DNA from: Oculina patagonica
Lineage: Eukaryota
Direction: 5' to 3'
DNA: 64,000 nt
NCBI RefSeq assembly: GCF_052425735.1
Contig: NC_135763.1
Location: 23,746,001 to 23,810,000 of the forward strand
The first letter of the stretch is position 1; each line of letters opens with the position of its first letter. Below are positions 1 to 64,000 of this stretch, piece by piece. The position numbers and the translations under genes are program-made. Below the pieces are notes generated by a model, which was given only the letters and a program-made list of their open reading frames with translations, did no database searches and was not told the DNA's origin.

Positions 1-38
1 ATGAGAAATTCATTCAACATTATTTCAGAAATATATAA
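1..38 (+). CDS. C-terminal end of an upstream Polinton ORF (..EKFIQHYFRNI*), possibly the adenain-like cysteine protease
   Basis: Open frame ending TAA at 36-38 just before the next ORF; protease identity is only a recollected resemblance of the tail. Confidence 0.3.
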   Translation, partial: EKFIQHYFRNI

Positions 39-50
39 CTTATATATATA

Positions 51-494
51 ATGGTTAAATCGTATTGTGTACGTGAAAAAATAAAAACTAATTCAGTTCC
101 TAATTCTGAAAAATATATGAGAACAAAAAACAATCGTTTAATACTCAAATCGAAATGCGTTTCTTGTGGTATTACTAAAACCCGTTTTGTTAGTGAGAAA
201 AAAGGGCGTGGAGTAGGTGAAACGATTAACAAAAAGGTCGGCGAAAAGATTCCAGGGTTTCAACAGGCTCAAGACTTAGCATCGGCTATCATGGCAGTTA
301 CCGGAGGTGATAAAGATCTATTTAAAAAATATTGGCGCGGTGACTTTGCTAAAGGTATATTTAATAAAAAAAGCGGAATTCAGACATCTAATTTTTGGAA
401 GCCTGCTGGTGCATATACAAATGAAAAATTTAATCCATCATGTAATTACACAGAATATAAAAACGGCAAATGGGTTAATCATTATTGTGATTAA
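51..494 (+). CDS. Polinton protein with N-terminal Zn-ribbon-like (DUF5679-like) domain, 147 aa
   Basis: YCVxE..KT...KNNRLILKSKCVSCGITKTRFV, paralogous to the N-terminus of ORF 514-1056; ATG preceded by TATATATATA. Confidence 0.7.
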   Translation: MVKSYCVREKIKTNSVPNSEKYMRTKNNRLILKSKCVSCGITKTRFVSEKKGRGVGETINKKVGEKIPGFQQAQDLASAIMAVTGGDKDLFKKYWRGDFAKGIFNKKSGIQTSNFWKPAGAYTNEKFNPSCNYTEYKNGKWVNHYCD

Positions 495-513
495 TATCTA
501 ACATATAATATAT

Positions 514-1056
514 ATGTGCCTGTCATACTGCGTTTCATGTAATAAAAAAACAAATTCAATCAATACTAAAAAAGTAAAAGCAAAGAATGGCCGACTTATG
601 GAAAAATCAATTTGCTCAATCTGTAAAAACAAAAAGAGTAAATTCATCAAAGGTGAAGGTATCGATATCCATAAAGCTATTTTAAAAGTAGCACCAAAAA
701 AGGGTTTTGTAATGCCTGGTCATCGTTATACAGGTCCTGGTAATCCTTTAGAGAAACAGGTAAAGTGGGATCAAAAAACAGGTAAAATACTGGAGATATA
801 TGAAAAACCAACAGGAAAAACGGACGCCGTGAGCATGCAACATGACGTGGATTACTCAGTATGTGCAAACAAACCATCAAAAAATCAGGTTAAATGCAAA
901 AACGAAGCTGATAAAAAGATGGTAAAAGCCCTTGATGCTATCCCATGGAAAGACAGACAATGGGGTCATGCTATTGCAAGGAACACTATTGCTACCAAGG
1001 CTAAAGTAGGTATGGGTGTAAAACAAAAGAAGACAAAAAACGGAAAACGGCGTTGA
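514..1056 (+). CDS. Polinton Zn-ribbon (DUF5679-like) + parvovirus VP1-type phospholipase A2 domain protein (PLA2X-like), 180 aa
   Basis: YCVSC...CSIC N-terminus; MPGHRYTGPGN Ca-binding loop and DAVSMQHDVDY (HDxxY) catalytic motif. Confidence 0.88.
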   Translation: MCLSYCVSCNKKTNSINTKKVKAKNGRLMEKSICSICKNKKSKFIKGEGIDIHKAILKVAPKKGFVMPGHRYTGPGNPLEKQVKWDQKTGKILEIYEKPTGKTDAVSMQHDVDYSVCANKPSKNQVKCKNEADKKMVKALDAIPWKDRQWGHAIARNTIATKAKVGMGVKQKKTKNGKRR

Positions 1057-1107
1057 GTAAAAATGATTGGTCTCAACAATTAGCCGATGAGTTACATAAA
1101 CCAATCA
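1035..1107 (+). promoter_or_regulatory. Candidate -1 programmed ribosomal frameshift signal: slippery A_AAA_AAC + 6-nt spacer + H-type pseudoknot
   Basis: Heptamer 1035-1041 in the PLA2 frame; stem 1 CGGC-GTTGAG (1048-1057) with CTCAAC (1072-1077) and GCCG (1083-1086); stem 2 TGATTGGT (1064-1071) with ACCAATCA (1100-1107). Confidence 0.78.
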
Positions 1108-2003
1108 GACGAAAATTTAAAACTAGAAGAGTAATATCAAATGGAATTGACGACATATGGTCTGCTGATTTAGTTTTTATGGATAAACTTTCAAAATGGA
1201 ATAAAGGTTATAAATATCTATTGACTATAATTGACGTATTCAGTAAATTCGCTTGGGCTATACAATTGAAAGATAAGAAAGGTACATCAATAACTAACGC
1301 ATTCAACAATATTGTCATTAATGACAAACGTAAACCTGAATTTCTCTGGGTCGATCAGGGATCTGAATTTTATAACAAAACATTCAAGGAATGGCTAAAG
1401 CAAAATGATATTAACATGTATTCCACTTTTAATGAAGGTAAAGCTGTTGTTATTGAGAGATTTAATAGAACTTTGAAAAATAAAATGTACAAACAGTTTA
1501 CTATTCAAGGTAACACACAGTATCTTGAAATGCTACCCATACTGGTAAAAGAATACAATAATACAAAACACAGTTCAATAAAGATGACACCAACAGAAGC
1601 TTCAAAGGAAAAGAATCAAGGAATTGTATATCTTAACCTATACGGTGATATGGAGCCATTATCAGCAAAACCCAAATTTAAGGTTGGTGATAAGGTCCGA
1701 ATATCTAAGTATAAACGAATTGTTTTCGATAAGGGTTATACACCAAATTGGAGTGAAGAAATGTTCGTAATTACTAAGATCCAACATACTAATCCCATTA
1801 CATACAAAATAAAAGATTTGAATGATGAAGAAATAAAAGGTAGCTTTTATGAACCTGAATTATTAAAAGCAAAACAGGATGTATTCAGAATTGATAAAGT
1901 GATCCGTAGAGATTATAAGAAGAAACAAGCTTTAGTTAAGTGGAAAGGATACAGTGATGACTTCAACAGTTGGATTCCAATCAAGGATTTGAAAGATATA
2001 TAA
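1041..2003 (+). CDS. Polinton retroviral-like DDE integrase with C-terminal chromodomain; probably expressed by -1 frameshift from the PLA2 ORF
   Basis: IWSADL / LWVDQGSEF / VVIERFNRTLK catalytic motifs; KFKVGDKVRIS..KGYTPNWSEE; chromodomain ALVKWKGYSDDFNSWIP. Frame is open from 1005 but has no ATG before the first catalytic Asp; the ORF-track start at 1053 is TTG. Confidence 0.93.
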   Translation, partial: RKTALSKNDWSQQLADELHKPIRRKFKTRRVISNGIDDIWSADLVFMDKLSKWNKGYKYLLTIIDVFSKFAWAIQLKDKKGTSITNAFNNIVINDKRKPEFLWVDQGSEFYNKTFKEWLKQNDINMYSTFNEGKAVVIERFNRTLKNKMYKQFTIQGNTQYLEMLPILVKEYNNTKHSSIKMTPTEASKEKNQGIVYLNLYGDMEPLSAKPKFKVGDKVRISKYKRIVFDKGYTPNWSEEMFVITKIQHTNPITYKIKDLNDEEIKGSFYEPELLKAKQDVFRIDKVIRRDYKKKQALVKWKGYSDDFNSWIPIKDLKDI

Positions 2004-2146
2004 ACAATTTTTAATTTTATTTATGGAGTATATGTTAAGAGTGCCTTAAAATCAATTATCAAGTATTACACATGCAAATAAAAATATTAAGTATAATATT
2101 TTTATAAATCAGTATTTGATTACAAAAAATATTTTAGGACATACAT

Positions 2147-2506
2147 TCATTTTAAAAAAACATTGAATTTATCAACAACTAATTTTTCATCTAATTGATT
2201 TTCATTATAAAAAAAGGTATCAATATTTATAATACTACAGCCGTTATCAAAAAGCATTTCGACAATATCTAAATTAAACAAATTTGATATTACGTAATTA
2301 GTATCTTTATAATTATCAAAATATGCTTCAATATAATCGGCCCATGGGTTAGCCCCGCCATCCATAACAATTACACTGTTTGGCTGATTAAATACCATGT
2401 GCTTGAAATTAAATTCATCTTCTAAGATTTTAGCAATTATTTTAATATCATTCGATCTATTATTTTTATCCGAGGTTAAACCGATTATAAATCTTTTATT
2501 ATTCAT
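2147..2506 (-). CDS. Polinton ORF, 119 aa, resembling a degenerate nucleoside-monophosphate-kinase fold
   Basis: FIIGLTS...IAKILEDEFNF...W...NYVISNL...VEMLFDNGCSIINID pattern echoes phage dNMP kinases, but the P-loop is lost; ATG preceded by TATATAT. Confidence 0.5.
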   Translation of the reverse strand: MNNKRFIIGLTSDKNNRSNDIKIIAKILEDEFNFKHMVFNQPNSVIVMDGGANPWADYIEAYFDNYKDTNYVISNLFNLDIVEMLFDNGCSIINIDTFFYNENQLDEKLVVDKFNVFLK

Positions 2507-2610
2507 ATATATATTACAAAGAGATTTTATTTTTATATGTGTTTTTTCCTTAAACGCACTATTAATGATATAAGAAATTAATATATTGTGTCATTAATAT
2601 ATAACAATTG

Positions 2611-2805
2611 ATGTTTTGGAATGATAATATTGTTAATGGCCGATACCAGAGATGGTTTACCAAAGAAGACAAAATGAAAGCTATAAGGCGCACAAAAGCC
2701 CGTTATATGCGAAATACACGATGGTTTTGTGAGCAATGTAAAAAAGAGTACAGTCTGGGTAGCAAGTGGACCCATATAAGACAATCCCATTCGAACGCAG
2801 TATAA
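2611..2805 (+). CDS. Small basic protein with a C2H2-like zinc finger (Polinton accessory ORF)
   Basis: WFCEQCKKEYSLGSKWTHIRQSH motif after a basic helix; ATG at 2611. Confidence 0.55.
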   Translation: MFWNDNIVNGRYQRWFTKEDKMKAIRRTKARYMRNTRWFCEQCKKEYSLGSKWTHIRQSHSNAV

Positions 2806-3263
2806 AAAAAGTTTAAAAAAGAGTATAAGAAGTTTTTTTTATTTTGAACCTAGGGTTGAGTTAGGGTTGGTTTTTCAGGCTTGGTTTTACAGGCTTGATT
2901 CCATAAATGAGGATTGCCATCGAAGCAAAGCTTCTCTTCCCACCAAGCAATCCTAGATTTGGCCGTTTTTTCCATCCCCGGCTCGGCTTCGCCTCACTGC
3001 CGAAAAAACTAAATCTGCTTCGCTCGGATCTCAGGGGTTCAAATATTTACATAAGGAGCAAATATAATTCTAAAAGAATTATATTTGATCATAAGTTTCT
3101 ATAACCATTAAATAAAATTTAATGCTTATGAAACGCTTCGCTTGGTTACCAGGATTGGTTTCCATTTTTGTTTTCCATTTTTTGTTTTCCGCATTTGATC
3201 CCAATATTTGATTCCAATATTTGAATCCATTTTTGGCCCCATATTTTTGGAACCAGCACTGGT

Positions 3264-3328
3264 AGTAGTGATGTACTACATCTCTAGGGCAAAAAATTTT
3301 TTGCCCTAGAGTGTAGTACATTACTACT
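3264..3328. repeat. 65-bp terminal palindrome at the Polinton end
   Basis: AGTAGTGATGTACTACATCTCTAGGGCAAAAAA / TTTTTTGCCCTAGAGTGTAGTACATTACTACT; one mismatch and one bulge. Confidence 0.9.
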
Positions 3329-3388
3329 GCTGTCCAAGTTTGAAGTAGATGCGGTAATCTGACACGAGTATTTCAGAGATAGAAAGGC

Positions 3389-3742
3389 TGAGCTCCCGTT
3401 AATTGAATACGAAATATGTGCTAAGACTACCATAAGTTAATGGTTACAAAATAGCGACCTTCAGATTGGACTACGAGTACGAGATTGAGTACGAGTACGA
3501 GTTTTCAAACCAAATTCGTGTGCCTCCTATAATCACTTATCACACCAATCTTATCCCTAACGTTTCAGTTTATGTGTTAGTCTGCAACAGGGACGAGTTA
3601 TAGTTTGGGGGATACAATTGTGTCGAAATTCCAAAGTCGTACTCGATCTCGTACTCGTAGTCAAATCTGAAGGGCGCTGTTTTGTAACCATCAACTTATG
3701 GTAGCCTTAGCACATATTTCGTATTCAATTGACGGGAGCTCA
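3389..3742. mobile_element. Foldback/MITE with ~100-bp terminal inverted repeats (possibly nested; inner element 3451-3679)
   Basis: TGAGCTCCCGTTAATTGAATACGAAATATGTGCTAAG...TACGAGTACGAGAT mirrored by ATCTCGTACTCGTA...CTTAGCACATATTTCGTATTCAATTGACGGGAGCTCA. Confidence 0.8.
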
Positions 3743-5584
3743 TGGGGTGTAGAGGTTACACCTGGTTGCCCTGGCTTTAATTACCCATCACTTCCACTAT
3801 CAAGGCAATGACATTTATTAGGAGAAAATGTTGTCCACACTCTATTCCCTTATTTGCATTATCACTTTCTGTGCAAAAATCGCTCCAGTTTATATAAAAA
3901 AAGACCAAAATTGAACACGACACACGAATAATAATTCTCTGTTTCAGTACATCATCTCCAGCAAATAAGCAGAACTCTAGGTATGTTGCTCCTATATTCC
4001 GTTCAGTACAGATTATCGGCTTAGAGACCATTAGCTATTAGTAAAATGACCGAAAAACAGAAGATAACAACTCCAGTTGTCCGTTTTAGAAAGGTATCCG
4101 CTAAGAAAGAGTCTAATATATCACGAATGTTTGCCCGACCGAGTAATTTAACAATTATCCTGTGAGATTGCGAGATTGATATTAGCCGCCGTCGCGGCCG
4201 AGGCCGTGTTGGTCAAAACAGAGGATAAGGTAAGCATTCAACTTTCTGCATTCCTGCAATTATTAGGACAGTTCTTATACCGATATCACTAATGGAAATG
4301 ACAGTTATCGAGCGCATCGTGACCATTTTTGGTCATGTGTAATGTTACAGTGATAACAATTTGTATATTTGATGCTGAGAGCAATGAAAGCTTGAAACTG
4401 AAAGAATTTTTGCAATGTTACGAAATGTGCCTTCTCGACAGTTTGTTATCTTTCTAGCAGTAGGCCAGATAATGTCAACAGAAACGTTAAGAGAATTTCA
4501 AAGAATTAACGCATAGATCAGGTTGAATTTTTTGTTCAATTGTTGATTCTTGTACAATAATATTGAAAACAAGCGATAAGAGTTCTTTAACTCTGTTGAT
4601 AAATGTTTCAAATTGTTTCCATTCAAGGGAAATATTCGCCTGAAATTAAGATACGCCTGTAAAATAACGAAATAAATATAGGTATAGCACCACTGACATC
4701 AGTATTTCTTTCCTCTGTATATTTTTAACTTGTTTAATTCACAGTCCGTCAGAGTAAACATGTTTTTTTTGGTGCTTAAAGGAAGTGGAAATTAACTACG
4801 CCGTAAACATGTACCGTGATCATAGCGTACAAGAAGGTAATATCAAGGAACAGAAAGACGTGCTGTTTCCCATGATTGTTTCCATAGCAAACATGAAAAA
4901 CATGTTGACGTTGCTTTTGTGTTACATTTTTCGAGTTCGAACTTGACCTGAGTGTTTTTTCCGTGGCAAACCATCATTTTTTGTTAGAATTGATAACAAG
5001 TTTTAAGCTGTGCACAATATTTGTTTTGTTGACTCTGCCGTTAATGGCAAACAATTTTTTCGCGCCAATTTTTTCTTTCCTTTTTCCGAGGCGGAAATGC
5101 GTATTAATTTTCTTTTACAAGTTAACAACCTCTTACGAACATTCCCCACTTAGAGGTAGACATTGCAACGATGACTTACAGAATTCATGGGAGAAAAGAC
5201 ATATTATTGGCAGCCACGGGTTCGGCAAAATTGAGCTTCAGTGTTTTAAAGAAAGGGGATCAGATTACCATAGCTTTCAAGATTCTCAAAACATGATATG
5301 ATTATGTCCGAAATGACTATTTGTTTTTCTGTGTTAATCCTTACAATTTGTCTCTTATTATACCTTTTGGTACCTTAGGTCAAAAATAACTTAAGTTTCG
5401 AGGCAAATGCAAGCACAGCGGACATTTTTTTCGTGCGATTACCAATAAACTTGTGGTTGTCTTGATTCAAAACTCTTCTTTTGCTAAATGATCTGAAAAC
5501 GTTTCTTTTCTTTTAAGAAGTTAGGTCCCATTTCACGTCAGGCACGCTTGCAGTTAACACAATAAATATCGAAGATTTCCTAGA

Positions 5585-8415: not shown

Positions 8416-11075
8416 ATGGCCTCTAAGACCTTGCTTATTCTTTGCCTTGCGGCCCTTTTGACACCACTTTTGGCTTTGCCTTTACCAATGCAAAATGGTA
8501 AGATGCGATTATATGTTTCATTAATTTCATACTCTTACTGTTTTGTTCTACTGGTCGACACTATAAACTGGTTTTGAATGCTACTCTGTCATTTCTTATA
8601 TCTGAAGACACAACTTATACATTAAGAACGTAGTAAGTTGCCTCAGGTCTTTTCAGGGGAACATATGAAAGATAGATTCTTATTTCATAAGGTCTTGTAT
8701 TTTCTTTGATAGAATTAAACAAATTCCGATGTCCACGTTAAGGATGAAACTAATATAGCAGTATTCCGACTTTCAACGTAATATTGATGACAGAATTAAT
8801 TTTCTTTCGTACAATTTATTAGTGTCATTACCTTTATTGATAGTGCAGATTTCAGGTGATACAAGTTTAAACACATTAATTTAACTTGATGAGGCTTTTA
8901 AAGCAAAGTTGAAAATATTGTATAAATCATTTTTGGATCAAATGAGAGCTGATGTAACTGTTCATGCTATGTTTTTCATCAAAAACGTACAAAGGTATTT
9001 TAACTTTACCGCATTACTTTAAAGATAAATAAAATGACTCAAACACGCCGCTATTTTCTTTTTTCAAAGATGTAATGGACGACAGTGGCAGTGGCGAAGA
9101 TAGAAGTGGTGAAAGTGGCGAAGAGGGAAGCTCAGAAAATGAAAGTGGAGACGACAATAATGGTAAGATATTTTAAAACAGTTTTCACTTTTATAGGCGT
9201 CATATACTAAACAATGGCTTAAACCCGAAACGAAACGAAAGGAAAGCAAAGGAAAGGAAACCAACTCAACAAATAAAAGCTAACCGCAAGTAAACCGGAG
9301 TGGAGCTAACCTCAAACAAACCGGAGTGAAAGCTAACCGCAAGCAAGACGGGATAAAAGCTGACCGCAAGCAAGTCGGAGTGAAATACTGTGATTTCGTT
9401 TCGCTTCGGGTTTTAGTACATCCCGTTTTAGCTCGTTTAAGACTGACGTTATTCCTTCAATATTCCAAACCGTTCAGTTTATATCACCTACGTGATGTAA
9501 TTTTTCCTTTGATGCAGCCGAAAAAATAATCCACCAAGATGAAAAACTTCATACTGTTGCCATGGGGTGTTTTCATAGTCTAGTTTAAAATATTTTAGTA
9601 GCTAACGCTGTATTTTAGAATAATAAATGGAAATTATATCTGAAATGTTCAAGCCTATACTCACATGAACAAAACGTTTGTGTACTAGTCGGTTTTCTAG
9701 GAAAAAAAACTGTTGAGGTTTTTATAACATCACTAACAAATGTAATTTTAAATGCCACGACGTTCATGCAGATAACTTAAGATTTTTCAGGTATTAATCA
9801 CATACAATTTATTCTTATGATACAGATAACGAGATTGGCGAAGACTCAGGAGATGACAGTGGTGACGAAAATGACAGTGAGAGTGGCGAGGAGTCTGGAG
9901 ACGACAACGGTGATGGAAATGATGATGAAAGTGGCGAGGAGTCTGGAGACGACAACGGTGATGATGAAAGCGGCGAGGAGTCTGGAGATGACAACGGTGA
10001 TGGAAATGATGATGAAAATGGCGAGGAGTCTGGAGACGACAACGGTGATGGAAATGAAGATGAAAGCGGCGAGGAGTCTGGAGACGACAACGGTGATGGA
10101 AATGATGATGAAAGTGGCGAGGAGTCTGGAGATGACAACGGTGATGGAAATGATGATGAAAATAGCGAGGAGTCTGGAGACGACAACGGTGATGGAAATG
10201 ATGATGAAAGCGGCGAGGAGTCTGGAGACGACAACGGTGATGGAAATGAAGATGAAAGCGGCGAGGAGTCTGGAGACGACAACGGTGATGGAAATGATGA
10301 TGAAAGCGGCGAGGAGTCTGGAGACGACAACAGTGATGGAAATGATGATGAAAATGGCGAGGAGTCTGGAGACGACAACGGTGATGGAAATGAAGATGAA
10401 AGCGGCGAGGAGTCTGGAGACGACAACGGTGATGGAAATGATGATGAAAGCGGCGAGGAGTCTGGAGACGACAACGGTGATGGAAATGAAGATGAAAGCG
10501 GCGAGGAGTCTGGAGATGACAACGGTGATAACGGAAATGACGGCGATAATGACGAGGAATCTGGAGATGACAGCAGTGATGGAAATGACAATGGCAATGG
10601 CGAAGACTCAGGAGATGACAACGGTGATGGAGATAATGATGAGAATGATAGCGATGGTGGCGACGAGTCGGGTGATGAGAACGGTGATGATGGAAATGAC
10701 GGAGATAATGATGAGGATGCTGGAGATGACAGCGGTGACGAAAATGACAATGATGGTGACGAAGAGTCTGGAGATGACAACAATGATGGAGATGACGATG
10801 ACAATAATGAAGATAGTGGCGAAGAGTCAGAGGAGGACAGTGGCGATGGAAATGAAGACGGCGACGAAAGTGGCGATGGAAATGACACTGGTGACAATGA
10901 CTATGTACAAGGGGATGGCAACAATGTTGACGTGGTTGACGAATTCGGAAGTGGAGCACAAGGTGTCGGATTCGACAGTTTACTTGCTATGAATAGCGGA
11001 TTTGCAATGAGTGGAGGACTTGCGTCGATATTTATGTCAACAGTAATATGCTTACTTTCAAACATGTACTACTAG
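8416..11075 (+). CDS. Secreted acidic protein gene 1 (Asp/Gly/Glu/Ser/Asn-rich, GPI-like tail), ~474 aa; SAP1-like candidate skeletal matrix protein
   Basis: Exons 8416-8497, 9070-9162, 9826-11075, GT-AG, phase 1/1, in frame. Signal peptide MASKTLLILCLAALLTPLLA-LPLP; about 13 copies of the 48-bp unit SGEESGDDNGDGNDDE; tail ..AMNSGFAMSGGLASIFMSTVICLLSNMYY*. Confidence 0.9.
9219..9417. mobile_element. Small MITE-like inverted repeat in intron 2 of gene 1
   Basis: TAAACCCGAAACGAAACGAAA ... TTTCGTTTCGCTTCGGGTTTTA with internal AGCTAACC(G/T)CAA repeats. Confidence 0.55.
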
Positions 11076-40340: not shown

Positions 40341-43300
40341 TCAGTCATCCTCCTCCTCTTCTTCCTCTTCTTCCTCTTCTTCTTCCTCTTCTTCTTCCTC
40401 TTCTTCTCCTTCTTCTTCACCCTCCGGTTCCTCTGTTTCTTCAGGAGCTTCTGTCGCTTCGGGAGCTTCAGTTTTCTCAGGTGCTTCCGTTTCTTCTGGG
40501 GCTTCCGTTGCACCCGGTGCTTCAGTTTCCTCAGGTCCTTCCGTTGCACCCGGTGCTTCAGTTTCCTCAGGTCCTTCTGTTGCTTCCGGTGCTTCCGTTT
40601 CCTCAGGTCCTTCTGTTGCTTCCGGGGCTTCCGTTTCCTCAGGTCCTTCTGTTGCTTCCGGTGCTTCCGTTTCCTCAGGTCCTTCTGTTGCTTCTGGTGC
40701 TTCCGTTTCCTCAGGTCCTTCTGGTGCTTCTGGTGCTTCCGTTTCCTCAGGTCCTTCTGTTGCTTCCGGGGCTTCCGTTTCCTCAGGTCCTTCTGTTGCT
40801 TCCGGGGCTTCCGTTTCCTCAGGTCCTTCTGTTGCACCCGGTGCTTCCGTTTCCTCAGGTCCTTCTGTTGCACCCGGTGCTTCCGTTTCCTCAGGACCCT
40901 CTGTTGCTTCCGGGGCTTCCGTTTCCTCAGGTCCTTCTGTTGCTTCTGGTGCTTCCGTTTCCTCAGGTCCTTCTGTTGCTTCCGGGGCTTCCGTTTCCTC
41001 AGGGCCTTCTGTTGCTTCCGGGGCTTCCGTTTCCTCAGGTCCTTCTGTTGCACCCGGGGCTTCCGTTTCCTCAGGTCCTTCCGTTGCACCCGGGGCTTCC
41101 GTTTCCTCAGGACCCTCTGTTGCACCCGGGGCTTCCGTTTCCTCAGGTCCCTCTGTTGCCCCCGGGGCTTCAGTTTCCTCGGGTCCTTCTGTTGCACCAG
41201 GGGCCTCCGTTTCCTCGGGTCCTTCTGTTGCTCCAGGTGCTTCCGTTTCCTCAGGGGCTTCTGTTGCCCCTGGTGCTTCTGTTTCTTCTGGAGCTTCGGT
41301 TGCTCCCGGCCCTCCAGTTACCTCTGGCTCTTCAGTTGGATCTGGGGTAGCTATTTGGAAATAACAATGGAATGGAAGAGATGAGAAACACTTTATTACC
41401 TCTGTGTCGTGTGAAACTAAATAGCAATAAAATTTAAATCATTTAAAAGACTCACAAAAATGCTTAATTTATTTTATTTAATGAAAGAGGGAAGAAATGA
41501 GTGATTTATCCGAGTTGAAGAAAGTCAAATTTTGCTGAGCCCTAATCAGGGATAAGATGCTTTCTCCTTTCCTTTTTTTTTGTACCAACAAATTTTCCAA
41601 GAAGATTCATAATTTAATTATTTTGTGGAATTCTTCGTTATGGAAAACTTTATATTTGTCTTTTTCATATCTTATAGTTGATAGTCTCTGTTAATTTACT
41701 TTTAAAGGTTTGCAAGTGTTCCGCCCTAAGAGATAATTTTGTCCCTTTTGTTATTATCAACCTTTCTAACCGGTTTGGGTGGGTGCAATTTGCCACTGAA
41801 GTCTTGGACTTGGACCAAAATCACGCAGACGCTGAGTGATGTCACCCATTGACGTCATCGGTGCGTCAGGAACTTAAGAGAAAATACCCCAAGTATCATA
41901 TAAATCTATGAAAAAGTTTTAAATAAACAGAGCAGCAGGGGGTTTTTCAGTAGGAATGAACTGACTTGGTTGATATATTAAACTTGCGGTGACTTGCAGT
42001 AACTTGCGGTTCTTTAAGTGTTGTAGCTAATTACTTGATCACGTAAGTTACGTGTTTAACTTCTGTAATTTTCTGTATTGAAAGAGCTTTGCTACGATAA
42101 TTAATCATATTTCAGTGTATCTAACGAAATTTCCGTAGTATGAAAAAGCAAACAAGCCGTGAGAAGCTGTGACGGCTGTATGGAAATGTATTTGAACGAC
42201 GATGCATGATTAAAGTAGGATGTTTCTTCGCCAAGCTAAAATGACGTTGCGCGATTGATGGCTTTCCATGACATTCTTAATTGTGCATGGCCTGCTGTGA
42301 AGATTTGACGACATTAGAAGCAATTAAACTATAATTGCCATTGTCATCATTTTTAGCTTTTGCTGGACCTTTCAAGGAACGCACAAACGAACTACGGATA
42401 CCGTTCGCTTGAACACAACACGAATTGTACCTTGGAAGGCTATTATCATCCAATTATGTAATGATTCTAGTTTAAATAACTTTGTGTATGTTACAGTTTG
42501 CGAAATACCAAGATTGTAGAAATTCAAAGAGCTGTCAAGCTACACTTAGGCCGTAGGCCGAGTGCAATTCTTCAGTCAGAGGAATTTTTACATGTTAAAA
42601 AATATATTGTGCATTTGGTCAAGTCCTTTACTTCCATTTTGGCGAATATAATTGGTTACTTGCGTAAATAATTTTTTTCACGAAGCGAGAGCTTATGCCA
42701 ACTTATGTAAGTATTTTGCGCTCTCCAAACAGAGCATAGCTTATTTGTCTACAAACGAAAACTGTGTTTTTCCATCATTTTGTAAAAAAGAGGAATATCG
42801 CCGAAAAAGTTCGATTGCAAACTTATGGTCAACTAAGTAACAGCTAAGCAATCTTTTCAACAATTTATATTGTACAAATGCTAGCCTTAAGTGAAGCGAA
42901 ATACTGGGTTTACTCTCCATCGGTAAAGTAACTTATTGTGTTCTCCTTGAGGCGAATCTGTCTTTATCAAATGATTGACGGCTGGACGGTTAAACGAGGT
43001 AGAAACTTTAAAAAGTTTTTGAATAAAGAGAATTACACCCTGTAAATGGAAAAGAATCCCTTAATTGACAATTAAACCTGGCCGCTATTTTCCAGATTTT
43101 GACTGAACAGTGAAATAGTTTAATGACTTTAGAATGTCTTGCAATCAGAAAATAAAAATACCCATCGATGTTAATGTGAACCCTTGATCACTATTATATT
43201 AAAACAACTAGATTGATTGTTCTCGTTTTTTATGACGCGATTCTTGTTTCAAGCTGCAAACTCATTGACTATGCTCTCTTAGAAAAGGAGAAGAAATAAT

Positions 43301-45533: not shown

Positions 45534-48500
45534 TTCAGTTTCTTCTTCTTCCGGTGCTTCAGTTTCCTCAGGTGCTTCTGTTTCCTCTGGTGCTTCAGTT
45601 TCCGTTCCTCAGTTCCTCTGGTTCTTCAGTTTCCGGTTCCTCAGTTTCCTCTGGTTCTTCAGTTTCCGGTTCCTCGGTTTCCTCTGGTTCTTCGGTTTCA
45701 GGTTCTTCCGTTTCCTCTGGAGCTTCTGTTTCTTCTGGAGCTTCTGTTTCTTCTGGTGCTTCTGTTTCCTCTGGAGCTTCTGTTTCTTCGGGGGCTTCTG
45801 TTTCCTCGGGGGCTTCTGTTTCCTCTGGGGCTTCTGTTTCCTCTGGGGCTTCTGTTTCCTCTGGGGCTTCTGTTTCCTCTGGAGCTTCTGTTTCTTCGGG
45901 GGCTTCTGTTTCTTCTGGGGCTTCTGTTTCCTCGGGGGCTTCTGTTTCTTCTGGGGCTTCTGTTTCCTCTGGGGCTTCTGTTTCCTCTGGAGCTTCTGTT
46001 TCCTCTGGGGCTTCTGTTTCCTCTGGTGCTTCTGTTTCTTCTGGTTCCTCGGTTGGACCTGAAATCAGTGAATAGATTTAAAAAATTAAACCCTTTCCGT
46101 TCGACCGCTTCTTCTTATGCAACTAAGCTGTTGTCCAGAAAAAAGCTTTGATTAAGACACTGGCTTTTTCTGGCGGTACTAGTCGGACTTCATTATTTTT
46201 TCTGGTCGCGCTTATTTCTGTGTTGTTGGCTTGTTTGTTCCAGCTTATAACTTTTTTTCTCATGAAGCAGGTTTTATAAAAGTAGGTTTCTTTTACACAA
46301 AAACATTAATTGTTTTCGTCCTTTCTCTTTACTCTAATTTTGTTTCAATATTGTTTTCATGCCCATACTATCCAGAAAGATAATCAAAAAAATGTACATT
46401 CGCGTAGCTACGAGACTAGTTTATAGCGGAGCTCCCTCGCACGTCGAAGATGCCCGCTAGCGGAGCCCTACACCTTCAAAAATTGGTATACTCTTCGCGA
46501 ACTTTTAAACATTTCATTGTCATGTCATTAAAGTCCGTCTGTTCGTGTGTCTGTGCGCACGTACCTACGTACACCTTATTTTGTATAACTCTAAACTCGA
46601 CTGAATGATGTGGACGTTTCAAAACGAAGCGATGGTATCACTGTGTAACTTGAATAAAACGTGAGGAAAGCAAGCAAGACAGAAACAAAAGATCCGAAAT
46701 AGTTGTCTTTGTTGAAACTCATATCCCTTGTGCAAGTGAGATGAAGCCGTTTGCGTTAAGTTTACTTGTTTGGCTTAAGCTTGTTGGCTCCGCGGTTGTC
46801 ATCATCAAGACTACACAATAATTGTGTTGAAATGACGCTAAGCTTCGAATCAATCAAGTTAACTGAAGTAAAGGACAAGTTCAAATGTAAGGTACGAACT
46901 TGACTGCATTGTTAAGCCTAATTTTATGACGAAAATATGTGTTCACTATTTGAGTGAATTGTATCGGCCGATTTTCGGATCTTCCCGTGAATTTGCCTTC
47001 ATTTATCCGCTTTTGTTGTATATGTACATGTACAGGCATTTTCAATTAAATCCCAGTTAAGCCGTGAGTTCCCTTTACCTGAGTTGAGAGTTAGGTTATT
47101 TTCTTTCGCCGTGAGTTTATTATCTTTTTTGTGAGTCGATTTTCTTTTTCCTTGAGTAAGTTTTTTTTTTGCAATGAGTATATTTTCTTTACCTAGAGTT
47201 AATTTTCTTTTACCGTGAACCACCGTGAGTCGGTTTTCTTTTGTAGTGAGTTGATTTTTTTTGCCGTGGGTTAACATTGTTTTGCTGTGTGTTTATTTTA
47301 TATTGCCGTGAGTTTATTTTATTATGCCTCCAGATAATTTTTTGTGCCGTAAGATATTCATCTCGCACCTACCTGTATGGGCCACCTTACTTTTCATATG
47401 TTGACGATTTCTTACCAGAATGGAAACATTATTCATAACTGGGAAAATCGAACGCTTTTAGGCTTGCCTAATGTCTATACTTTTTTTATAGCTTATGAAA
47501 TCACAAATTTGCGAGTTTTGTTAATATTTAAAAATGGCCAAACCGAAGCATACTGAAAGAGCGAATCACACCTCAATCCGCCCCTTTCATTGTTACAAAT
47601 ATAGCTCATCAAATCGTTTTCTACGAATGAGTACAATATATATAATACACTATCATTTCCTGTAACTGACATGCCCATATACGTGTACACGGTGCGAGAA
47701 GTATTCGAGAAACACTACAAATTTCAAAAATTTTGAAGCCACGTGAACCTTATATTATTTGTCGATTGTTTTTTACTTAAAGTTTGAAATAAAACTGACA
47801 CGCTGTATAATGTCAAGTGCCCCTGATAAGCGGGATATCTTTTATGAATGATTCAGCCATCCAAGTATTTTGAAACGTATTGCGTCGGTAACTTTGTTGA
47901 GTAGAGGAATATATTACATAAAAAGACCCTAATATAGGACAATGCATGACAGTGCACGAACACGAATATTGGTAATTTTGTTTTGCCGTGAGTGTGATAA
48001 TTTGGAATTTGGTTTAACACAGCATATTTGTGTGAGGAACTTATTTAACTGCAGTTTGGTACTTGAAATCAGTGTGCGTGGGTTACCGCAGCTTAATTTT
48101 CAAGTACAATGTACTTGTCCATTACATTATGCAAGAGAACATTTACCACCTGCCGAGGAAGAGTAAAGCCACATTAAACGAGTGAAAGAGGCAAAATAAT
48201 CTAAAATAACTTTGGTTTCTGTTGGATTCCGTTTGGCTCATTTACAATATATTGAAGACTATTCACTATCTGCCGAGGCAGAATAAGTCGCTCACATGTA
48301 TATTCACCTTTTTATCGTCAGGTAATTAGCAACACTTAACGGCATTGTCAAGCTAGCCCACGTGTGGCCGCACATACCTTCTAATAGTATTGTTTCAAAA
48401 TACGGTCGCCGACTTCGTTCAGGGTCATTCTCATTGTTATTTTAATTTATCTCTTAATTTTGCCTTCTTCTTCAAAAACGTCAATTCAAAGTCAAATGCC

Positions 48501-63441: not shown

Positions 63442-63641
63442 TCATTTCACTTCCGGTTCTTCAGTTTCCTCTGGCTCTTCAGTTTCCGGTTCCTCAGTTT
63501 CCTCTGGCTCTTCAGTTTCCGGTTCTTCAGTTTCCTCTGGCTCTTCAGTTTCCGGTTCTTCAGTTTCCTCTGGCTCTTCGGTTTCCGGTTCCTCAGTTTC
63601 CTCTGGTTCTTCAGTTTCCGGTTCCTCAGTTTCCTCTGGCT
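63442..63641 (-). CDS. Last exon of secreted acidic protein gene 8 ((EPEETEEPETE)n..EPEVK*); upstream exon(s) beyond the window
   Basis: Acceptor tgcag at 63642-63646, phase 1 like the paralogues; 33-bp repeat nearly identical to that of gene 7; TGA 63442-63444. Confidence 0.78.
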
Positions 63642-64000
63642 CTGCATGCACAGGGTTATTTAAAAGGTAAATTAGTTTAAAATGCCATTGCTTAGTTAAT
63701 TTCATATTAGTTATTGATATATAAGTAATTAATTAGTGAATGAATGAATAAATGGATGAATGATTTTTTTTTTAAATAAATATTAATAAAGACGCATAAT
63801 TAAATCATTTTAGCATTGGCATATGCCCACCGTTTCAATGCCTTGTTTTATTATTTCTTTCTTTAAAAAAACACTCGTGACACTATAAAAGTAAAATGCT
63901 TATAATAAATCAATGAAACAATTACAGTTGAACGTTTTTCGGTTAAATAATTAATATACCTTGGCGGAGAACCCGCCTAACAAGTGCAAGGTTGCTTCTT

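Follow-up and report, generated by a model that had tools for sequence, protein, structure and literature searches.

The subject of this study is a stretch of 64,000 nucleotides of Oculina patagonica DNA (contig NC_135763.1, positions 23,746,001 to 23,810,000 of the forward strand), hereafter called the window, which begins inside a virus-like element. It is probable that this element, a double-stranded DNA (dsDNA) element of the Polinton type, carries a programmed -1 ribosomal frameshift cassette that joins a phospholipase A2 (PLA2), an integrase and a chromodomain in a single fusion protein. An earlier note on this DNA, made from its letters, had proposed such a frameshift, and the comparison with relatives argues for that interpretation: the -1 arrangement characterizes a clade, the genes are under purifying selection, the slippery heptamer is conserved, and relatives in which the two genes are fused are colinear with the window. 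On a wider scale, the evidence leans towards the view that a large and ancient clade of animal, and above all coral, Polinton-type elements makes its integrase only by -1 frameshifting from a virion phospholipase gene, and that the kind of stimulatory RNA has changed from lineage to lineage, with a long-range stem in most of them and a local hairpin or pseudoknot in that of the window. This would be the first Gag-Pol-like recoding in eukaryotic dsDNA mobile viruses. Still other lineages may have shifted to polymerase slippage on A-runs or to plain in-frame fusion.

The proposed frameshift signal in the window

The cassette is made up of the following features:

514..1056, + strand: zero-frame PLA2 open reading frame (ORF) of 180 amino acids, with an ATG start and a TGA stop; profile matches to PF08398 and PF18930
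1005..2003, + strand: integrase frame, -1 relative to the PLA2 ORF, opening just after a TAA; rve and Chromo domains
1005..1056, + strand: overlap in which both frames are open, holding the slippery heptamer and the spacer
1048..1107, + strand: candidate stimulatory RNA structure of the window sub-lineage, with the topology of an H-type pseudoknot

The PLA2 ORF consists of a DUF5679 Zn-ribbon (about 526-645; PF18930, 29.4 bits) followed by a parvovirus-type PLA2 domain (about 700-999), for which PF08398 scores 36.2 bits against a curated cut-off of 23.9. The motifs YTGPG and HDVDY are readable in its translation, and we take them to correspond to the Ca-loop (YxGxG) and to the HD catalytic motif (HDxxY), respectively. 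An exact-sequence look-up of this ORF returned no record. The integrase frame contains an rve core (about 1152-1418; PF00665, 48.9 bits) and a C-terminal chromodomain (about 1887-1997).

The elements of the signal described in the earlier note are found where it had placed them, with one qualification for stem 1. Direct reading confirms that the integrase frame opens at 1005 after the TAA, in the -1 frame of the PLA2 ORF, with an overlap extending to 1056, and reading of the ORF bears out that this frame has no ATG upstream of its first catalytic Asp. The heptamer A_AAA_AAC (1035-1041) lies within the overlap in the phase of the zero frame and is followed by a spacer of 6 nucleotides, after which the hairpin of stem 1 begins. 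This stem pairs 1048-1057 with 1072-1086. Its 6 base pairs GTTGAG/CTCAAC are present as described; the proposed extension CGGC/GCCG also exists, but its 4 base pairs require a 5-nucleotide bulge on the 3' side. The resulting hairpin has a stability of -10.6 kcal/mol. Stem 2, the complementarity of 8 nucleotides between the loop and a downstream segment, pairs 1064-1071 with 1100-1107 over 8 base pairs, its 5' arm being located inside the loop of stem 1.

The proposed mechanism would operate as follows. Most ribosomes translating the Zn-ribbon/PLA2 ORF would terminate at 1056 and yield the protein of 180 amino acids, while a minority would slip back by one base at A_AAA_AAC within the overlap, aided by the RNA structure that starts 6-7 nucleotides downstream. 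The slipped ribosomes would read the integrase frame up to 2003 and produce a protein of about 500 amino acids with PLA2, integrase and chromodomain. As the integrase has no start of its own in this scheme, it would be made solely as a fusion. We infer the ribosomal nature of the slip, its efficiency and its purpose. By analogy, the purpose is likely to be a low ratio of integrase to PLA2, together with the carriage of the integrase into the particle along with a virion PLA2: as a virion accessory role has been proposed for the PLA2 of adintoviruses (PMC8502044), a fusion made at low frequency would bring the integrase into particles and fix its dose.

The candidate pseudoknot was evaluated with a purpose-written, pseudoknot-aware H-type stacking score, which enumerates pairs of two stems. 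The best H-type pair consists of exactly the two stems first described. Its score of -24.5, compared with -13.9 +/- 3.0 in dinucleotide shuffles, was reached by none of 400 shuffles and by none of 59 control windows taken from the same two ORFs. A scan of 900-1300 against Rfam yielded nothing relevant. The heptamer by itself constitutes weak evidence, because A-rich heptamers are frequent in the Lys-rich linker, in all phases; it is its conservation across relatives that counts.

Conservation of the cassette among relatives

Relatives were collected by a protein search with the integrase frame, and the figures given for this search hold among the matches listed. The closest named matches are hypothetical proteins of Oculina patagonica, up to 96% identical. 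The matches fall into two length classes. Those of about 316 amino acids represent the integrase frame alone, for which a prokaryote-style gene caller has used an alternative start codon beside the zero-frame stop; those of about 490-560 amino acids hold PLA2, rve and Chromo in a single ORF. By our own tally of member sequences, the split-type clusters amount to about 3,600 and the fused ones to about 200, or about 18 to 1. A set of 90 related loci was then assembled from ENA assemblies, IMG/VR and metagenome contigs with integrases 47-77% identical to that of the window; the scan of IMG/VR with the integrase contributed a single distant locus. The state of each locus was assigned by separate tblastn searches for each of the two ORFs.

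Both genes are visible in 68 loci, and in every one of these the integrase is immediately preceded by PLA2. The frame states of these 68 loci are:

-1 frame: 33 loci
in frame (fused): 23 loci
+1 frame: 11 loci
same frame with a stop: 1 locus

In 28 of the 33 -1 loci, as in the window, no integrase-frame ATG precedes the first catalytic Asp. PLA2 was not detected in 17 loci, 13 of which have almost no upstream DNA; in the other four, the integrase is extended far beyond its N-terminus in frame, and of three extensions scanned with Pfam one contains PLA2. The observations that the earlier note had named as refuting were looked for in 88 related loci. A stand-alone, ATG-initiated integrase, which is one of them, was found in none of the relatives with enough upstream DNA.

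Several NCBI gene models of Oculina patagonica are of note in this respect. P0037 and P0106 have predicted introns across the PLA2/integrase junction that remove residues conserved in relatives. Taken together with P0075, these models either bridge the junction with introns or graft the integrase onto unrelated exons, and the frame change has probably misled the annotation in these cases.

A neighbour-joining tree of the integrase ORFs as they stand, comprising 56 loci, contains two deep clades. One of these is fused in frame in all of its 17 members; the other (n=39) comprises 27 -1 loci, 5 fused, 6 +1 and 1 other. On the basis of this distribution, the -1 state has been inherited across the deep clade. 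The existence of a sister clade that encodes the fusion directly supports the view that the fusion protein is the real product. A fused cluster of 98 members and a split copy found in the same assembly are 99.5% identical, and only one gap separates them over 1,536 aligned bases. The fused copies within the -1 clade are thus length variants in the minority, or else errors of assembly at a homopolymer. In-frame fusions, which the earlier note had regarded as a sign that the window might be a mutant, thus do exist, but they make up a separate deep clade (17/17) and account for only 5 of the 39 loci inside the -1 clade, so that they give no sign of the window being one. Some copies have decayed, with interruptions of the integrase ORF in 6 of the 33 -1 loci and in 5 of the 11 +1 loci.

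Between -1 loci, the integrase has a ratio of nonsynonymous to synonymous substitutions (dN/dS) of 0.05-0.13 and PLA2 one of 0.08-0.22, at dS values that range from 0.5 to more than 2, into saturation. Because dN/dS is this low at near-saturated dS, neither ORF can be regarded as a dead gene, and the -1 overlap with its heptamer, of which conservation had been predicted, is maintained under strong purifying selection. The fused relatives are colinear with both ORFs of the window: the two separate alignments abut, with a median gap of -2.5 residues (range -24 to +12).

An in-phase X_XXY_YYZ heptamer occurs within the overlap in 28 of the 33 -1 loci. Across the coral lineages, NCA AAA AAC are the codons of the zero frame; N can be any of the four bases, with a change of amino acid, while the columns of the heptamer are invariant or at least 90% conserved. 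L051 and L052, a distant pair, have A_AAA_AAC as well. Elsewhere the site is T_TTA_AAA with further A's behind it, or a run of 7-10 A's. Runs of A7-A10, some of them after TTT, stand at the frame change in L024, L026-L029, L042, L045, L049, L061, L062, L064, L067, L068 and L082; these lineages may use polymerase slippage or a structure-independent form of frameshifting. A plain count of heptamers by phase was discarded as non-discriminating, as long A-runs fit every phase; phase alone is persuasive only for sites with six A's.

The RNA downstream of the heptamer differs between lineages. The main coral sub-lineage has a stem that begins exactly 7 nucleotides downstream of the heptamer and of which the conserved core of 11 base pairs is extended to 12-15 base pairs in individual loci. 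The 5' arm of this stem falls within the overlap, and the 3' arm follows about 55-60 nucleotides further on, in conserved Thr-Arg-Arg-Arg codons; this 3' arm uses CGN codons for Arg, though the G+C content of the genomes is 32-40%. Minimum free energies (MFE) of the long-stem loci have z-scores mostly between -2.6 and -4.2, the exceptions being L020 (-1.8) and L022 (-1.0). A statistic for the single stem gives z-scores of -6 to -9, reached by none of 150 shuffles, in all long-stem loci except L022 (z -1.5). RNAalifold recovers the long stem in 11 out of 11 sequences, and 20 loci, of which 17 are distinct, were found to have it by a covariance model. Over these 17 distinct loci, 98.4% of the positions are paired, versus 25-54% when the partner is slid. 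Most of the variation in the stem is of a wobble-tolerant kind (U-A/U-G and C-G/U-G). Direct reading of L020 reveals a rewritten stem with three compensatory pairs. The covariance model produces strong matches solely in its own sub-lineage; the window scores 48 bits through sequence homology, without having the stem.

The sub-lineage of the window comprises seven loci, namely the window itself, L085-L088 and the fused loci L002 and L003. It has kept a homologous 5' arm of the long stem but, using AGA as its Arg codons, has lost the 3' arm. The partner of the 5' arm is here formed by CTCAAC and GCCG, which are closer to it, and an octamer further downstream is complementary to the loop of this hairpin. 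Both stems are invariant in all seven loci (stem 2 having 7-8 base pairs), while the spacer varies. Positions 1039-1128 form the most conserved 90 nucleotides of the PLA2-integrase region, with a pairwise identity of 0.90-0.93, compared with 0.73 overall and 0.56-0.71 just upstream. At the codons that would build the pseudoknot (Asp-Trp and Pro-Ile), the sister lineage has other synonymous or neighbouring forms, which are unable to pair. The pseudoknot is therefore a plausible candidate, specific to the lineage of the window.

Competing explanations

Several observations weigh against a programmed ribosomal frameshift, or at least against parts of it. The linker is Lys-rich and rich in A-runs in all classes of loci, so that heptamers arise there by chance fairly frequently: an in-phase one is also present in 8 of the 23 fused and 5 of the 11 +1 loci. 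In addition, the slip site doubles as a hot spot for homopolymer mutations. In the A7-A10 lineages, several of which are non-coral members of the -1 clade, downstream structure is not significant, and they fit transcriptional slippage equally well. In the window, nested folding of 1042-1125 gives a non-significant MFE of -12.3 kcal/mol (z -1.07) and leaves stem 1 unused, and a second nested-fold estimate for the cassette has a z-score of -0.03. The compensatory changes that the earlier note had expected in the stems are not found in the seven loci, where stem 1 is invariant. The H-type pseudoknot is thus statistically unusual and constant within its sub-lineage, but it is without covariation and absent from the sister lineages, in which both 3' arms are lacking. 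Even for the long stem, covariation in the model-fitted alignment is modest (0.126 versus 0.111, a level attained in 14 of 500 shuffles, with one double change). Finally, the copy in the window may be a truncated and inactive fragment, of which about 2 kb of element is visible.

The same fusion could also arise, and would still be programmed, if RNA polymerase stuttered on the A-run and added a base to some of the mRNAs. The frame change is situated at an A-run in every -1 locus, L027 has a run of 7 A's without an in-phase heptamer, and several lineages combine A7-A10 with z-scores of about 0 to +1.5 for downstream structure. For these A7-A10 lineages, transcriptional slippage is a serious option. 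The run in the window and in the corals, however, has only six A's in strict X_XXY_YYZ phase and is followed, 6-7 nucleotides downstream, by a conserved and very stable structure, and polymerase slippage needs neither phase nor structure. As an explanation of the whole, we consider it unlikely, while giving it a small place beside ribosomal frameshifting. A still smaller chance is accorded to separate expression of the integrase, from an AUG on a spliced leader or from a non-AUG start in 1005-1150, the overlap then being a matter of gene packing. Splicing is frequent in eukaryotic DNA viruses, and the models P0037 and P0106 do bridge the junction with predicted introns; these introns, however, delete conserved residues, no segment is missing from the fused relatives, which align colinearly with the two frames, the sister clade has the fusion encoded as such, and a conserved heptamer and stem at canonical spacing would be left unexplained. 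An ordinary intron is ruled out: both frames are conserved up to the linker, and since the fused relatives are colinear and nothing is skipped, there is no room for one. Termination-reinitiation at the TTGA stop/start overlap was rejected as well, there being no AUG and no conserved position of the zero-frame stop, which is located 3 to 48 nucleotides from the heptamer among relatives.

The arrangement in the window could, in principle, belong to a decaying copy in which an indel, by mutation or in the assembly, had broken an ancestral in-frame fusion once. In-frame relatives do exist, a homopolymer site is prone to indels and long-read errors, a fused variant and a split copy differ by the single gap mentioned above, and some copies have decayed, as is evident from the interrupted integrases. 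Yet the -1 state is common to a deep clade and occurs across assemblies of different kinds, both ORFs are intact with a dN/dS of about 0.1 at near-saturated dS, the frame change always falls within the same short linker, and split clusters outnumber fused ones by about 18 to 1 among the matches listed. This explanation is largely refuted by the data on arrangement, tree and selection, and its probability is very low.

The element and comparable recoding systems

Apart from the cassette, two features of the element can be recognized in the window:

1..2005, + strand: visible part of the virus-like element, the window beginning inside it; blastn similarity to L001-L003 and L085-L087
51..494, + strand: upstream ORF of 147 amino acids with an N-terminal DUF5679 Zn-ribbon (PF18930, 38.8 bits), a neighbouring gene of the element

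The likeness to related elements ends just past the stop codon of the integrase according to blastn, and tblastx found no resemblance to element genes in 2004-64000. The upstream ORF is homologous to the ORF that precedes PLA2 in L085 and L002. It has the same DUF5679 Zn-ribbon at its N-terminus as the PLA2 ORF, which suggests a duplicated N-terminal module. In the PLA2 protein, this module depends on the lineage, with DUF5679 in some and an unrelated N-terminus in others. By blastn, window 1-655, which takes in the upstream ORF together with the Zn-ribbon of the PLA2 ORF, resembles L085 and L002, and 657-2000, from the PLA2 domain onward, resembles L001, L003, L086 and L087. Because these two parts match different relatives, the element is a mosaic. 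The remainder of the window contains coding-like tandem arrays at 9836-10828 (48 nucleotides x 17, in an Asp/Glu/Gly-rich ORF at 9817-10992), 40480-41309 (36 nucleotides x 23), 45553-46045 (18 nucleotides x 28) and 63451-63643 (33 nucleotides x 6). Judged by their sequence, they look like host genes for low-complexity proteins, separate from the element.

No packaging ATPase, capsid or DNA polymerase gene is present in the approximately 2 kb of element that are visible in the window, and the designation Polinton is taken from the relatives only, by virtue of their packaging ATPase, rve integrase and putative PolB-like motifs. As the window begins inside the element, it could include no more than one of the two ends at which a Polinton has its terminal inverted repeats and target-site duplication. 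In these relatives, the PLA2 and integrase genes are part of dense, intron-less modules with a Pox_A32-type packaging ATPase (found in L001-L003 and L086), VLTF3-like, Bro-N/VRR-NUC and HNH genes, and an ORF of 1,295-1,324 amino acids. The latter, their largest (12668-16555 in L001, 15658-19632 in L002), contains a central Endonuclease VII domain and, towards the N-terminus, a weak match to an MGME1-like nuclease. Among the invariant columns of its C-terminal half are what we take to be PolB-like motifs; sequence searches of Pfam, PHROG and PDB gave no polymerase match for this ORF. Capsid and protease genes of the relatives were not recognized by Pfam, and for the capsid gene the searches of Pfam, PHROG and PDB identified no candidate either. 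Polintoviruses are reported to be abundant in stony corals (PMC11131425), and the gene content of the relatives appears to fit the coral polintoviruses described there. In L085, the closest relative, a LINE-type (long interspersed nuclear element) retrotransposon with Exo_endo_phos and RVT_1 domains occupies 1002-4694, a few kb upstream of the PLA2-integrase pair; this copy is probably disrupted.

The Gag-Pol junctions of retroviruses and retrotransposons consist of an in-phase X_XXY_YYZ heptamer, a spacer of 6-7 nucleotides and a downstream stem-loop or pseudoknot. The element has a heptamer, a spacer and a candidate downstream structure of this kind, and it shares with these systems a downstream frame that lacks its own start and encodes an rve-family integrase, and an upstream product that is presumably a virion protein made in excess. 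It differs in being a dsDNA element of which the shifted frame contains neither a reverse transcriptase nor a retroviral protease, in having a Zn-ribbon/PLA2 protein as the upstream partner, and in possessing a sister clade that is fused in frame. Bacterial insertion sequences of the IS3 and IS1 families produce OrfA and the OrfAB transposase by -1 frameshifting, and the rate of frameshifting sets the dosage of the recombinase. Here too, frameshifting at an A-rich heptamer with a downstream structure would be the sole source of a DDE-superfamily recombinase, fused to the product of a small upstream ORF. In contrast to these prokaryotic systems, in which the upstream ORF supplies a DNA-binding domain, the present element resides in an animal, and what its upstream ORF supplies is a phospholipase domain, plus a Zn-ribbon in this lineage.

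With respect to PLA2, the closest parallel is the 'PLA2X' virion accessory gene of adintoviruses and Polintons, which encodes a parvovirus-type PLA2 (Starrett et al. 2021, PMC8502044). Like adintoviruses and the coral polintoviruses, the elements considered here are Polinton-like animal elements with such an enzyme, and rve integrases are abundant in stony corals. In the published accounts, PLA2 is a separate gene with a pX-like tail, and frameshifts are mentioned only as damage or assembly error (PMC8502044, PMC11131425); neither a fusion of PLA2 with the integrase nor any recoding is described in them. The parvovirus VP1 unique region has the same PF08398 domain with the YxGxG and HDxxY motifs, and the enzyme is carried there on a virion protein. 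Unlike in VP1, where alternative splicing or initiation fuses PLA2 to the capsid protein, the fusion in the present elements would be to the integrase and by recoding.

RNA viruses, retroelements, bacterial insertion sequences and phages characteristically employ programmed frameshifting. Among eukaryotic DNA viruses, a review of recoding counts relatively few known users (PMC8310308). In the full-text literature searched on Polinton, Maverick, polintovirus and adintovirus, frameshifts appear only as damage or assembly error, and no earlier report of recoding was found, in agreement with the impression of the earlier note that it is not a standard part of Polinton annotation.

If the frameshift reading is true, Polinton-type integrases are being mis-annotated, as gene-calling programs divide them, assign false starts to them or span the junction with false introns. 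The integrase would then probably be a component of the virion that is delivered together with the genome, which bears on the question whether these elements are true viruses, and the rate of frameshifting would act as a built-in dosage control for integration. Furthermore, the in-frame fusion, the heptamer with the long stem, the heptamer with the pseudoknot and the long A-runs would together offer a natural series for the evolution of recoding signals.

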